A stretch of 64,000 nt of DNA, taken from assembly GCF_001194135.2 (NCBI RefSeq), contig NC_068982.1:8751821-8815820 (forward strand), in the 5' to 3' direction. Every line of letters begins with the position of its first letter. The first letter of the stretch is position 1. The stretch is from Octopus bimaculoides (taxonomy: Eukaryota). A program made the position numbers and the translations under genes. This document shows, in pieces, positions 3,714 to 63,900 of the stretch. Below the pieces are notes generated by a model. The model did not search any database, was not told the origin of the DNA, and saw only the letters and a list, made by a program, of their open reading frames with translations.

Positions 3714-4028
3714 TACAGTTCTATATTTAAGAGATGAGGAATTATGTACGTTATTTACATTATTTACATATGTTGTTTGTTGTTAACACAACACTTCGGC
3801 TGATATAACCTCCAGCCTTCATCAGGTGCATTGGGGAAAATTTCGAACCTGGGTTCTCATTCCTAAGGTATTTTTCGATGTTATTATTATTATTATTATT
3901 ATTATTATTATTATTATGATTATTATTATTATTATTATTATTCAGGTCCCTGCCTGGAATCTAACTCGGAATCTTGGGGTTAGTAACCCGCGCTCTTAAC
4001 CACTACGCCGTATGCCCACGGCCATATG
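3714..4028 (-). mobile_element. Chimeric SINE: tRNA-like head + (AAT)n + hammerhead-bearing tail
   Basis: Minus strand reads GGGCATACGGCGTAGTGGTTAAGAGCGCGGG (A box) ...CCGAGTTAGATTCC (B-box-like), then (AAT)n, then a tail homologous to 36986-37170. Confidence 0.85.
3785..3830 (-). ncRNA. Minimal type I hammerhead ribozyme-like fold (family 1, degenerate)
   Basis: CAC-CTGATGA-A-GGCTG-loop-CAGCC-GAAGT-GTT-GTGTT. The CUGAUGA box is intact; GAAAC is mutated to GAAGT. Confidence 0.7.
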
Positions 4029-5119
4029 AATAATATCGTACGTATATATGAAGTAAGGTTACAAATGCTTATATTGATTCAGAAATTTTTTGGTAGTTAT
4101 ATTATCTATTCGTAGGAGCAGGAATAGCAGTTAAGTATATTGGGATCTGACCTTAGATTGTAAAGAAACAAAAACATTTTGTACGGTTTTCTACTCACTT
4201 TGTCGATCAAACTGAGCTAAGAAAGAAACGAATAATTGCTCCATACTTAAGCACAAGGCTAGGAAGCTTCAGCTGAAGAAACTGTGGATAATATCAATCT
4301 CAAATAAATGCCTTGTAATTTGTATTATCAACGCGAAAGGACAAAAGACAGAGGTGAACTCGGAGTGATTTGAAATCAGAAAAAAATTGTTATAAATAAA
4401 TACAAACAAGACATTTTTTTTCGTACTCTTTCAAGACACCAACGACACAAATACTAATAAAAAAAATCATCAATAGTAATAATCATAATATGTTGAATAA
4501 TTCATCATCGGCGCAGAGGTGTCTCGTTAAAGATCGAGAAAACACGCATTCCCGCTTGTTGTGGATGTTTTATGGGCTGGAATACTATTAATAAAATCTG
4601 TCCAATAAAAAATTAATGTTAAAAAAGCCAGGAGCAGCACAGTACTCTATAGCTACATAGTATCGATTTTTTTTTCTCACTACTCAGAAAAGGATCAATA
4701 TTTCAAGTGCAAGACAGAGGTGGGACGATGTACTATGAAGTGTGTGAAATTCAGTGTAAATGAACTGAGATTTCTTCAAACTAGGATTGGAACTGCTCCG
4801 TATTGTAATAGGTGAAGTAAAACAACGAGGAACGTAATAATTATATGTGAGATATTACCTGTTCATATACAAACGCAGGCAAACATACACACACACACGC
4901 ACACACGCACACGCTCACACACACACACACACACACACATACACATATATGTATATATACAAATATATATATATATATATATATATATATANNNNNNNNN
5001 NNNNNNNNNNNNNNNNNNNNNNNNNNNNNNNNNNNNNNNNNNNNNNNNNACACACACACACACATACACATATATGTATATACAAATCTATATATTTTAT
5101 TTTAAATATTTTAAATACT

Positions 5120-5935
5120 TTAAAATGCTTCAACTGGAGCACCACCATTGACTCAGCTACACCATCATTTGGAAACTTCTCTAATATGTGGCATTTGGTC
5201 AATGAGAGAATTTGATGATGCTGCCTTCATCTGCGTTTCCTGCCGTGAGGTAGGCTCGTCTGGAACCCGTAACAGGAAGAGATCCAATTTCGTTTTAAAA
5301 ACACTTACATCCACACCATGCAGGACTCTCAGGCATTTTGGAAGGATTTTAAAGAGCTGTGGGTCCTTGAAGCCCAATCTGTTGCAGTATATGGTCCTTT
5401 ATTTTGATGGCGATGCTGGGATCCTTGGCACTATGTAATGACGCTCCTTTCTGCAGTTTGAATAACTTTCAATGCCAAAGTTTGGTGCAAGGCCTTCTAG
5501 GATTTTCCAGATGTATATTACTGCAAATCTCTCCCGCCTTCGTCCCAGGGAGACGAGTTTTAATTTTTTTCAGTTTTTCCCAGTAGCGGAAATGCTGCAT
5601 CGAGACGATTTTAGTGTAGCTTCGTTGGATTGCTTCGAGTTCCGCCGTGGATTTTTTATTGTATGGTGACCATAGTTGGGAGCAATAGTCTAAGAATGTA
5701 TGTCTGCCAAAGGATCATCAGTGTCTCCTTTTCTTTTGTTTTGAAAGTTCGGTGGATCCACCCAGCCATTACTCTGCATTTTATTACCAAATTGGTAATA
5801 TGCTCTTGGAAAGATGCATCATTGCTTATATGAATGCCCAGGTCACGCATTGATTTTGATGCAGGGATTTCAATTCCTCCTGGGCCAGTGTATCCTGTCT
5901 GCATGTCGTTTAGCTTTGTGTGTTGGCAGCGTCCA
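5120..5935 (-). mobile_element. CR1-group LINE 3' fragment
   Basis: MRDLGIHISNDASFQEHI...MAGWIHRTFKTKEKETLMILW and GFKDPQLFKILPKCLRVLHGVDVSVFKTKLDLFLLRVPDEP: RT thumb and C-terminus of the CR1/L2 group. Confidence 0.85.
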
Positions 5936-5939
5936 AGAG

Positions 5940-60800: not shown

Positions 60801-63067
60801 GGCTGGAGGAGAGATCAACGCTTATAAGCATTTGTATTCCCAGCATACTGCTAGTCAGCTTTCTATGGAAAGGACGCGTTTCACTCGTCACCTCTCATAA
60901 CCGCTGGAAAAACTAGGTATTGCGTGCCTGATTTCATTCAGTCATGCACTATGGTAGAGACATCTCTAGCAGTTCGATGTCAGTGTACAGGTGTAGTCAC
61001 CATCTATCGGACGTATAGTTCTTCAGTTCGTCTCCTTACCAGATTTGCAGTTCTGGGTCGTGCAATAATCAACAGGGGAATGTTTGGCATCCAGAATGTT
61101 CACAAGTGTCAATAGAATTTTGTTAGCCAGACCAGGCTAAGCGGTTGGTAGACGTTCCAGGCCATGTTCTACAGAGTTTTAGTGCGAAGACCTACACGGG
61201 AGGGTTCTGGACGCCAATCAAAATCAATAAGCTGGTCTATTCCAGAGGATTTTGAGCCGGTGCCCATGGGAAATTTTCAGAAATATGTGGACGGGTGTCG
61301 TTGGTACCAGATAAACTCAACGGGTACGAAATTACCCCGTTAGCCAGGCCTACCAAACCAAAATTGCTCCGCAAGTGACGAATTTTTTGCACGTTTTCGT
61401 TCAATGCACGACCATTGCAGTTTTGAGCTGTTGTTAGACGTCTACCGTCACACGTGGGGTATATATATCTAAGACACAGCCTGGAAGCAAAAAAATATCA
61501 CGAACCTCTACTACAGTATTGAGTACTCTTTCTTCCGATAGTTAATCAACACCATAATACCTGTAAATATACAAACATGCATACGTACAAACATAAACAC
61601 GTGTGTGTGTGTGTGTGTGTGTGTGTGTGTGTGTGTGTGTGTGTGTGTGTGTGTGATAAAATTAACTATTTATCAATTAATTCTCAATTAATTTCAGTTA
61701 AAGAAATTCTTGCGATGCTGTAATATGAATGGTATTTAAGAAGACTTTCTACAATTTCAATAGAGAAGAAATTATATCCACAAGCATTAGTTTGTGCTTT
61801 AGAAATATCTCCATCTGACATTACCAACTCATGTAATCATTTGTGCTGTGTCTAAACATTCAAGGAAGCATGAAAATCTGTCTCATACGACCTTCAATAT
61901 AATTTTGTTAGAATTTCCTTATTTATTTACTCATCAATTCTTAAAGAACTCTCACATATCTTCTAAAGTACGTATAATGAAAATTTAATAATATCATGAA
62001 AAATTCATTGTATATAAATATGCGTTAATCGTTTACAATATATTGCCATACATAATATCTTATAGAAATTTTCAATCTGTTTCTTGCTTCATAAAGTATG
62101 TTGCAGTTGTCGAGCTGAAAATTTCAATAACTAATATATAGCAAAAATACAAGAAAATCCATGTTTAACAATCCATTATCATATGAATAGCTTTAATGCC
62201 TCTATCAGATTCATTTTTTTCTCCCACACACAAAATCGATCTTCCATGAAATCCCTTGCATTAAAGGGGCTCGAAGATGCATGTCAGTATTAAGTTCATG
62301 TTTTTCAGTATTTGATTATATTGGAGATTAAGTCATAATCATAAGACTGAAATATATTAATCGGCCTCCAATTTCTAAGCATTTTACTTTTAAGTCGGTC
62401 CTTTTCAGACGTATCTCCTTTGAAAAGTGCGTCCATTCAGTGAATTTTTATCTATTATTCTATCTCTGTCCAGTACTTCATTATTCTGTGCAAATAAGAA
62501 TAGTTTCCATGGAAAAAAACAAGGCTACTAAAACAAAATATAAACATGTTGTAACGATATTTAAAATGGATTCAACCAATATTTCTTAGGTTAGTTTGAA
62601 TGCTTGCTTTGTGGCAAACACTGTAAATATTTTCACTATGCCCGAGTTCCCCTTTTTACAGATCATTAAAATGTTGAATTCTTTGACTTCAAATAGGGAA
62701 TGGTAATGAGATTTTAATTGTATGCGAATTGGGATACTATGTGCCAGTTATTTGACACACTTGGCACGTTATACATTTCGTAATGGTGTCAAACATACGT
62801 ATCAAAGAAAAAAGATACCATATTTACCGTTAGATTGGCATGGTTTTGGATATTTACCCGTTTTGTTAAAGCAATGAATGCAATTCTCTTGATGAAATGC
62901 AAAAAAACATATGTCAGTTGAAATGTAAATATCAGAATGCATTTCATTTCTATTCACACACACACACACACACGCACGCACACGCACACGCGCACACGCA
63001 CACACCACACTCACGCACATATCTTTACTCACATTCACATATATATGTAAGTTGTGTGTACCTGTAT

Positions 63068-63232
63068 ACATTTGTATGTAGCTGTGTGATAAGAAGCTTG
63101 CTTCCCAACCAAATAAATTATTCAGGGTTCAGACCACTGCGCCGCGTCTTGGGACAGTGCCTTCAACTATAACCTCGGACCGACCAAACCTTGTAAATCG
63201 ATTTGGTCGAAAAAATCTGAAAAAAGACCATC
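63068..63232 (+). mobile_element. SINE family A, 5' half (3' half resumes at 63920)
   Basis: GAAGCTTGCTTCCCAACC...GGGTTCAGACCACTGCG...GACCAAACCTTGT...CTGAAAAAAGACCATCG. Confidence 0.75.
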
Positions 63233-63486
63233 GTGTGTGTGTGTGTGTGTGTGTGTGTGTGTGTGTGTGTGTGTGTGTGTGTGTGTGTGTGTGTGTGTGT
63301 GTGTGTGTGTGTGTGTGTGTGTGTGTGTGTATTTATGTATGCATGTATGTATGTATATGTATGTATGTATGTATAATATCAAAGGTGTAAAATTGGCGTA
63401 CTCTGAATGATAGAAAGAAATCCACGATTCAGGTACTCTAAACCAGTCGGAAGGATGGAACGGGGGTGTCTGCGCGTGCAGTAAAT

Positions 63487-63900
63487 GGTTCATTAAAAAC
63501 GACGGAGAAAAAGACAAGAACAATATACAACAAAATGACGTAGCACGTGCAAAGTGTCAATAAGACACTCAGAGAAGAAAAAGAGTTGTTGTTTTAAATT
63601 TCGAGCATAGCACTTCTTCGGAAAGAGGAAACATCGGAAAGTCCATAGGAAAAGGAAGAGAGAGGAAAGAAATCACCAACAGTACACGTGTATTTTCAAA
63701 AATGTAACTTCACATGGATTCTTGGCAATCTTTTCCCTTTGGACTCTCCTATGTTTCCTGTTTCCGATGAGAAGCTATGCTCGAAACTTTAAGTAACCAC
63801 CCTTTTTTCTTCTCTGAGCATCTTATTAATACTTTGCATGTGCTCCAGCTTCACGTTGCAGAGTTTTTTTCTTGTCTTTCTCTCCGGTTTTTGACTTAAC
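63487..63900. mobile_element. Fold-back element with about 190-bp arms, each carrying a hammerhead-like core (family 4)
   Basis: 63487-63681 is a diverged reverse complement of 63720-63900. + strand CCGATGA-GAAGC-TAT-GCTC-GAAAC at 63764-63787; minus strand CCGAAGA-A-GTGC-TAT-GCTC-GAAAT at 63598-63621. Confidence 0.75.

Follow-up and report, generated by a model that had tools for sequence, protein, structure and literature searches.

The window considered here is a stretch of 64,000 nucleotides (nt) of Octopus bimaculoides DNA (contig NC_068982.1), which is AT-rich (~35% G+C), eukaryotic, and packed with microsatellites, dispersed repeats that resemble short interspersed nuclear elements (SINEs), and fragments of long interspersed nuclear elements (LINEs), next to a single piggyBac-like fragment. 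Within it lie short units with hammerhead ribozyme-like motifs, as well as two remnants of Penelope-like elements (PLEs). Minimal type I hammerheads are carried in the terminal repeats of PLEs and in short PLE derivatives, and we consider it probable (roughly 0.6) that the window contains decayed hammerheads of this PLE type at three independent loci, in four copies: the two copies of a repeat termed family A, an element termed E52, and a site at 19532-19567. The basis of this reading is sequence anatomy, statistical enrichment, and insertion layout. Since each copy carries at least one inactivating defect, the motifs would be fossils, not working ribozymes. All three loci are situated at microsatellite junctions:

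3741-3906, minus strand: family A copy 1, whole unit, which begins immediately behind an (AAT)n run and terminates with a (TGTAAATAA)n tail.
3785-3830, minus strand: putative minimal hammerhead relic of family A copy 1, UGCAC CUGAUGA A GGCUG-10 nt-CAGCC GAA G UG U U GUGU.
36961-37152, plus strand: family A copy 2, whole unit, which follows the (AAT)n tail of a LINE and ends in (TGTAAATAA)n.
37036-37081, plus strand: putative minimal hammerhead relic of family A copy 2, GACAC CUGGUGA A GGCUG-10 nt-CAGCC GAAA CG U U AUGU.
52187-52636, plus strand: E52, an element of ~450 nt between (AC)n and (AT)n.
52424-52502, plus strand: hammerhead-like relic of E52, CCACUA CUGAAGA U GAGC-CAACCA-GCUC GAAA CU-CACUC-AG U C.
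19532-19567, minus strand: hammerhead-like site that the first-pass annotation had not listed, CUA CUGAAGA G GUUGC-AAGAA-GCAAC GAAA A U A UAG.

The two copies of family A are 80% identical to each other (3741-3906 paired with 36961-37144) and have an identical 5' start directly after (AAT)n, which fits a discrete short element; the (TGTAAATAA)n tail is present at both copies and nowhere else in the window. Copy 1 possesses a canonical core and the G10.1-C11.1 closure of helix II, and its defects are a G instead of an A at position 15.1 and a U at 15.2. Both stem I and stem II are visible in its predicted fold, and helix I after H17 comprises four base pairs (bp) including one G-U. In copy 2, the palindromic ACGU helix III is intact; here the defects are A6G and a mismatch at 1.1/2.1, which affects a helix I of likewise 4 bp. 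Because the defects differ between the copies, their common ancestor could have been a textbook minimal hammerhead. As far as it can be inferred from two copies only, this ancestor could have read ACAC CUGAUGA A GGCUG..CAGCC GAAA CG U U GUGU, with ACGU as a helix III for dimers. Helix II is the same in both copies; in helix I, one pair has changed on one side (G-U to A-U) and another is broken. No tRNA-like head (transfer RNA) was detected on family A by ARAGORN. The open reading frame (ORF) of the LINE upstream of copy 2 ends at 36883, and two distant loci homologous to this LINE (at most 57% identity) reveal that the LINE ends in (AAT)n, which makes family A a separate unit placed at that microsatellite; neither of these two fetched loci contains a hammerhead. 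The ORFs at 36536-36883(+) and 833-1228(+) encode a conserved LINE C-terminal domain (..VGALGTV..LQKTALLGT.RILRK..) that Pfam does not recognize, and loci homologous to them have RVT_1 upstream and an element end in an (AAT)n tail.

E52 is canonical in its core, in helices II and III, and at the GUC site. The six nucleotides that follow GUC form three mispairs out of six with CCACUA, and a perfect 6-bp partner, UAGUGG, is found 19 nt further 3'; judged by these pairings, neither register would give a complete ribozyme. The element combines a main copy on the plus strand with a second copy that is inverted and truncated at its 5' side (52187-52274, ~90 nt), the 3' ends of both being directed outward, and its 3'-terminal motif AGCCAT..TTGATGTGACAA has a third occurrence immediately inside the left arm (52272-52298). 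An inverted-copy layout and a bias towards microsatellites have been described for PLE insertions (Craig et al., 2021, PMC8557442), and the layout of E52, by analogy, matches this description. Downstream of E52, and separated from it by an (AT)n run, lies a LINE reverse transcriptase (RT) fragment (52749-53705(+), RVT_1, E 2.8e-14). The site at 19532-19567 has a canonical core and a canonical 5-bp helix II, combined with a helix I of 3 bp and a vestigial helix III, which is a single pair around a 1-nt loop. It is flanked by two (TA)n runs, the 3' one of which enters an assembly gap (19266-19419). The unit around it, with the motif at 19564, has the 11-mer ACUACUGAAGA in common with E52 and no other shared sequence. 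The window contains nine assembly gaps in total (4992-5049, 9200-10040, 10533-10710, 15453-15527, 17920-18390, 19266-19419, 32212-32359, 35004-35508, and 39264-39703). None of the nine folds reported by the first-pass annotation touches or spans a gap, the closest approach being that of the additional site at a distance of 113 nt, so that the finding is unaffected by continuity across gaps.

How much such motifs mean in this type of DNA depends on the stringency with which they are defined. In AT-rich, hairpin-rich DNA, three-way-junction shapes with a loose 7-nt core occur at chance frequency; above background is only the exact core combined with a G-C-closed helix II. The first part of this statement is illustrated by a relaxed descriptor, as had been proposed for checking the reported folds, which allows up to one core mismatch and requires a stem I of at least 4 bp, a stem II of at least 3 bp, 0-1 spare nt on either side, and GAA, with up to 36 nt ahead of stem I'. 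Run on the window, it yields 23 matches, compared to 20.1±5.1 in block dinucleotide shuffles and 17.2±4.8 with permuted decoy cores, and it admits three of the nine reported sites. Since this count is at chance level, about nine hammerhead-like folds are to be expected by chance at such looseness. A strict type I descriptor finds no match in the window, and three matches when one core mismatch is permitted, none of them at a reported site.

The second part is borne out by two descriptors for one half of the motif. The looser of these, which was defined a priori (CUGANGA, 0-1 nt, helix II of at least 4 bp, GAAA), finds two matches against 0.16 expected, a count attained in 3 of 400 shuffles and with 14 of 1259 decoys. 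The tighter one (CUGANGA, exactly one nucleotide, helix II of at least 4 bp closed by G10.1-C11.1, GAA) finds three matches against 0.0155 expected in 2000 block shuffles, none of which contains two or more; across 1259 decoy cores, the mean is 0.017 and the maximum 2. The three matches are located at 3825(-), 52443(+), and 19564(-), i.e., in family A copy 1, in E52, and at the site that had escaped the first-pass annotation. Such an excess implies that the window contains some genuine hammerhead-derived signal, and the earlier claim of PLE-associated, minimal-type hammerhead-derived motifs can be upheld for these three independent loci. In terms of individual features, the invariant core C3 U4 G5 A6 N7 G8 A9 is present at 3785(-), 52437(+), and 19564(-), and absent at 37035 (A6G), 14770, 14906, 21580, 57755, 63591, and 63759. 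A G10.1-C11.1-closed helix II preceded by one bulged nucleotide is found at 3825(-), 37041(+), 52443(+), and 19564(-), and the combination of G12 A13 A14, A15.1-U16.1, and H17 at 37035 (GAAA CG U U), 52437 (GAAA CU..AG U C in the register of the Rfam model HH9), and 14906.

A covariance model, built from 60 synthetic sequences that follow the published minimal-hammerhead layout and run unfiltered, places the two family A copies on ranks one and two of the window (13.4 bits, E 0.12, and 12.6 bits, E 0.23) and the site at 19532-19567 on rank four (12.2 bits, E 0.3), and gives E52 8.1 bits; up to an E-value of 10, it returns none of the remaining reported sites. In Rfam, which may not model the minimal PLE type, the whole window contains no hammerhead at gathering score, and none up to an E-value of 10 among the 150 matches listed, most of which are microsatellite-driven microRNA (miRNA) look-alikes. 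The sole hammerhead in sensitive local Rfam scans is Hammerhead_HH9 at 52424-52502(+), with 20.6 bits against a cut-off of 52, and scans of 3720-3910, 14680-15000, 19430-19680, and 63480-63900 found no hammerhead. According to TRF, no tandem repeat extends across any candidate site. The sole tandem repeat in the window with a period of at least 40 lies at 54386-54569 (period 73, 2.5 copies, 92% matches).

The PLE remnants, which the first-pass annotation had placed at 5940 and 28790, are real, but position 5940 itself is not PLE sequence:

5975-6564 (approximate), minus strand: PLE remnant 1, 5'-truncated at a microsatellite, with GIY-YIG region, 3' untranslated region (UTR), and several frame breaks.
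28900-30078 (approximate), minus strand: PLE remnant 2, with RT motifs 1-2 (29830-30078), an internal deletion, a Zn-finger-like linker, a GIY-YIG region (29050-29551), and a 3' UTR.

The two are 72% identical over 6059-6564 and 28982-29478, both coding on the minus strand, and the GIY-YIG region of remnant 2 contains frameshifts and stops. Conceptual translation of the remnants, across frameshifts and stops, yields a Cys-rich linker followed by VYKAKV..YIGMTGNSFKERYTQHLVSF..TSLSNMKWTLKEG..C.LC..EK. Both of the domains that characterize such elements can be read in the window, the endonuclease as VYKAKV..YIGMTGNSFKERYTQH..C.LC..EK and the RT as motifs 1-2 of remnant 2. A full HMMER scan with a 51-residue fragment from the window retrieved 130 homologues. 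One of these, P0063, has RT C-terminal motifs, then a Cys-rich linker, and then GIY-YIG at its C-terminus, a domain order that identifies the remnants as PLEs with a C-terminal endonuclease and not as the hammerhead-less Naiad type. The two longest HMMER matches, P0025 and P0081, were discarded as spurious. A word-indexed protein search with the stitched GIY-YIG region gave no match, and Pfam recognizes neither the GIY-YIG fragments nor their homologues. A strict hammerhead scan of the PLE remnants was negative. Near remnant 1, the minus-strand sequence at 5400-5967 looks like the C-terminal part of a non-LTR (lacking long terminal repeats) reverse transcriptase (..RDLGIHISNDASFQEHI..), as does 35556-35740(-), and 5756-5849 is 76% identical to 35556-35649. 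Pfam finds no match at 5400-5967(-), where the likeness to a LINE RT is a reading of the translation only.

The first-pass annotation had combined the reported places into six repeat families with a common order of stem I, seven core nucleotides, usually an extra nucleotide, stem II, GAA, a short stem III, and stem I'. All nine places are present at their positions and the order can be drawn at each of them, but the core is canonical at two of nine only:

3785, minus strand: CUGAUGA (canonical), family A copy 1.
14751-14791, minus strand: CCGACGA, family B copy 1, in the loop of a palindromic foldback and without helix II; not a hammerhead.
14906-14955, plus strand: CCGAUGA, probably fortuitous fold, CGUCU CCGAUGA A GGGA..UUCC G GAAA CAGCUG U A AGACG.
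21519-21641 (reported as 21550-21610), minus strand: CAGACGA, family B copy 2, foldback of ~120 nt with a 22-bp stem, z -4.0; not a hammerhead.
37035, plus strand: CUGGUGA, family A copy 2.
52437, plus strand: CUGAAGA (canonical), E52.
57755-57800, plus strand: GUAAUCA in place of the core, three of six fixed positions matched, single three-way-junction-like fold; not a hammerhead.
63591, minus strand: CCGAAGA, family F.
63759, plus strand: CCGAUGA, family F.
63495-63892, no strand assigned: family F as a whole, a 400-nt imperfect palindrome formed by two inverted copies in tail-out arrangement, located within the microsatellite core of a dispersed repeat.

Three of these places (3785, 37035, and 52437) resemble mutated relics; the other six lack the catalytic core and are chance look-alikes or, at best, unprovable relics. 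The six repeat families are confirmed in part only: families A, B (14709-14790 and 21521-21602), and F (the two arms of 63495-63892) have two copies each in the window, but 14906, 52437, and 57755 are single. Family B (14680-14790 and 21519-21680) is a palindromic foldback of ~120-160 nt, akin to the hairpin of a miniature inverted-repeat transposable element (MITE), with the supposed core in its loop. Its first copy is seemingly interrupted by ~160 nt, and the remainder of the right arm resurfaces near 14950. Type II and type III topologies were rejected by eye for both E52 and family B, because there is no closing hairpin for helix I. The arms of family F are 71% identical in a BLAST comparison of the whole palindrome and 77% and 83% identical in arm-to-arm alignments. 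Each arm contains CCGA(U/A)GA..GCUC GAAA, with C at position 4 and a helix I of at most 1-2 bp; since C4 is found in both arms, the progenitor was also C4. The inverted, outward-facing copies within a microsatellite suggest that family F may derive from a PLE. Its interpretation as a hammerhead is unsupported. As far as two copies show, families B and F both lack the conserved core in each copy, an outcome that the first-pass annotation itself had named as speaking against its reading.

At 14906, helix I measures 5 bp, the loop CAGCUG is palindromic, and A15.1-U16.1 is present, but the fold also carries U4C and an additional G behind helix II. On the 5' side, its stem I is the continuation of a dispersed repeat, and on the 3' side it is similar to an arm of family B (GACGUCUUU..UUAUUAAU), so the two strands appear to derive from two unrelated elements; the fold is probably fortuitous. 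A weaker side possibility is that the C4 core CCGAUGA, which is found at two independent loci, 14906 and family F, constitutes a tolerated natural core variant. As a standout variant, C4 cores (CCGANGA) were rejected, having two matches like most single-substitution core variants. The dispersed repeat contains an internal (TA)n/(TG)n microsatellite and occurs at 14811-14898, 16542-16622, 24180-24267, 28688-28751, 49368-49399, and 63147-63222, with second halves near 15061, 16690, 24326, and 63940. Two copies hold extra DNA in the microsatellite (14899-15010 and ~63376-63900), and the repeat may therefore act as an insertion hotspot.

The evidence can be read in several ways. One interpretation, put forward by the first-pass annotation, is that all nine folds from six families are minimal hammerheads of diverse, currently mobile, PLE-dependent RNAs resembling retrozymes. 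Both a hammerhead-derived signal and PLE remnants are indeed present, both copies of family A begin at a defined 5' start, and the inverted layout of family F and E52 is PLE-like. However, seven of nine cores are non-canonical and families B and F are coreless in both copies; the relaxed descriptor does not exceed chance and Rfam is empty at gathering score; there is no intact motif and, by TRF, no tandem array; and the 3' parts of the PLE remnants lack a hammerhead. We regard this interpretation as highly improbable, and the postulated retrozyme-like mobile RNAs are not borne out by the window. At the opposite extreme, AT-rich and hairpin-rich repeats might by chance yield CUGANGA...GAA beside stem-loops, without any site being descended from a ribozyme. 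This would account for relaxed counts that equal those of shuffles, for model E-values that all exceed 0.1, for the negative Rfam result, and for the ordinary fold z-scores. It is nevertheless unlikely in view of the tighter half-descriptor, with three matches where 0.016 are expected and none of 2000 shuffles reaching two, and of the fact that all three matches share the non-obligatory extra nucleotide, the G-C closing pair, and a position at a microsatellite junction.

For family A, a further explanation has to be considered. Stringent-type LINEs and their SINEs have a common 3' stem-loop, which is followed by a short-repeat tail. Family A might accordingly be the 3' end of a LINE-dependent, SINE-like retroposon, in which the GGCUG..CAGCC stem-loop, ~50 nt upstream of (TGTAAATAA)n, would be the recognition hairpin of a LINE RT, flanked by CUGAUGA and GAA through coincidence. 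The short tandem 3' tail that is exclusive to family A in the window and the position of copy 2 directly after a LINE 3' end agree with this. Yet the adjacent LINE ends in (AAT)n instead of (TGTAAATAA)n, the window contains no LINE with a (TGTAAATAA)n tail, and the two copies allow the reconstruction of a full minimal hammerhead (4-bp helix I, extra nucleotide, G-C closure, GAAA, ACGU, UH), so that we likewise consider a LINE-dependent origin unlikely. Quite doubtful, too, is the more far-reaching notion that family A is a discrete, solitary and non-tandem SINE-like retroposon of ~150 nt, with a fixed 5' start, an (AAT)n target preference, and a minimal hammerhead ~55 nt before (TGTAAATAA)n, the consensus of which would still be an active dimer-cleaving ribozyme, probably in a cephalopod.

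The preferred reading, that family A, E52, and the site at 19532-19567 are decayed hammerheads of the PLE type, has to contend with several observations. The PLE remnants share no sequence similarity with any motif-bearing unit, including in their 3' regions (the only similarity found being ACUACUGAAGA between E52 and the unit at 19564), and alignment of the 3' regions of both remnants revealed no complete hammerhead, only an isolated CUGAUGA in remnant 1. Both E52 and 19564 have a poor helix I. With two copies per family only, no compensatory change can be counted; the open frame of family A retrieved no further copies in protein space, and metagenome contigs contained no exact match to either a family A 22-mer or an E52 27-mer. 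With E-values of 0.12-0.3 and 7.5 in the covariance model, no single site is significant alone, short-range folding z-scores are ordinary, and no hammerhead reaches the Rfam gathering score. The features of the tighter half-descriptor are derived from the literature, but it was set after the matches were known, which makes its P-value optimistic; the looser a priori version is nonetheless already unusual.

If the preferred reading is correct, the three loci probably descend from PLE minimal hammerheads and, by analogy, work like them. An active motif would cut the transcript of the element at the H17 site, probably as a dimer formed through the palindromic helix III (ACGU in family A). Insertion would be accomplished by the RT of a PLE together with its GIY-YIG endonuclease, which would prefer microsatellites as targets.

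Several further features were noted in the window. A piggyBac-like transposase fragment lies at 42729-43100(-) (DDE_Tnp_1_7, E 3.4e-12). At 44211-44300, a near-perfect inverted repeat of ~34 bp forms a hairpin with sub-threshold scores for several miRNA models on both strands, which is probably a small foldback or a MITE end. The ORF at 45527-46309(+) encodes 260 amino acids with a high share of Lys and Glu, among which a possible degenerate zinc-knuckle-like stretch (CFTSGERGHMKAWC) was recognized by eye; it has no Pfam match and might represent a gag-like remnant. A SINE-like dispersed repeat of ~220 nt (..GTTCTGAGTTCAAATTCCGCCGAGGTCGACTTTGCC..) occurs in at least seven copies, including a tandem pair:

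11689-11909: SINE-like repeat.
27919-28361: SINE-like repeat, tandem pair.
47105-47262: SINE-like repeat.
48877-49048: SINE-like repeat.
49807-50027: SINE-like repeat.
55153-55328: SINE-like repeat.

The features described here can be compared to four known systems. The Rfam family Hammerhead_HH9 (RF02275) aligns at 52424-52502, where it shares the core, helix II, GAAA, the 3-bp helix III, and the GUC site; however, the score of 20.6 bits is below the gathering value of 52, three of six helix I positions are mispaired, and the conserved intronic context in which HH9 occurs is not apparent. Animal non-LTR retrozymes (Cervera and de la Peña, 2020, PMC7229834), whose link to PLEs is already published (Li et al., 2026, bioRxiv 10.64898/2026.07.22.740005), are likewise small non-coding units with a type I hammerhead and a proposed dependence on PLE proteins. 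In contrast to the window, which contains neither tandem arrays nor a canonical loop-loop hammerhead, they form tandem arrays of 170-400-nt monomers with a canonical hammerhead in each unit. Since no candidate is part of a tandem array, the units described here are not retrozymes in the published sense. The PLE remnants themselves resemble C-terminal-endonuclease PLEs of Neptune/Nematis-like layout (Craig et al., 2021, PMC8557442) in the GIY-YIG motif after a Cys-rich linker, which is found in both remnants, in insertion at microsatellites, and in inverted-copy layouts. They differ in that the copies are truncated or internally deleted, with broken frames and a retained 3' region without a hammerhead, and the likeness is one of layout.

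The closest counterparts of the three loci are the minimal type I hammerheads of PLEs (Cervera and de la Peña, 2014, PMC4209133). Different from these, every copy in the window has a defect in the core or a helix, helix II measures 4-5 bp compared to 6-8 bp, and no copy is embedded in a recognizable full PLE or its terminal repeat. Common to both are a short helix I, the CUGANGA core, one unpaired nucleotide before helix II (in family A, in E52, and at 19564), the G10.1-C11.1 closure, GAAA, and a helix III that is reduced to one pair or palindromic (ACGU in family A). Most minimal hammerheads are already known to be solitary, highly variable, and probably derived from truncated PLEs, and the copies in the window are mostly solitary and highly variable in sequence between families as well. 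Decayed relics of PLE-type minimal hammerheads are therefore a known phenomenon, which opens no new question. A literature search found no paper describing hammerheads in octopus, and should the three loci prove genuine, the range of PLE-type minimal hammerheads would extend to this cephalopod genome, which would add one more lineage to the animal-wide pattern of thousands of solitary, fast-evolving minimal hammerheads derived from PLEs.

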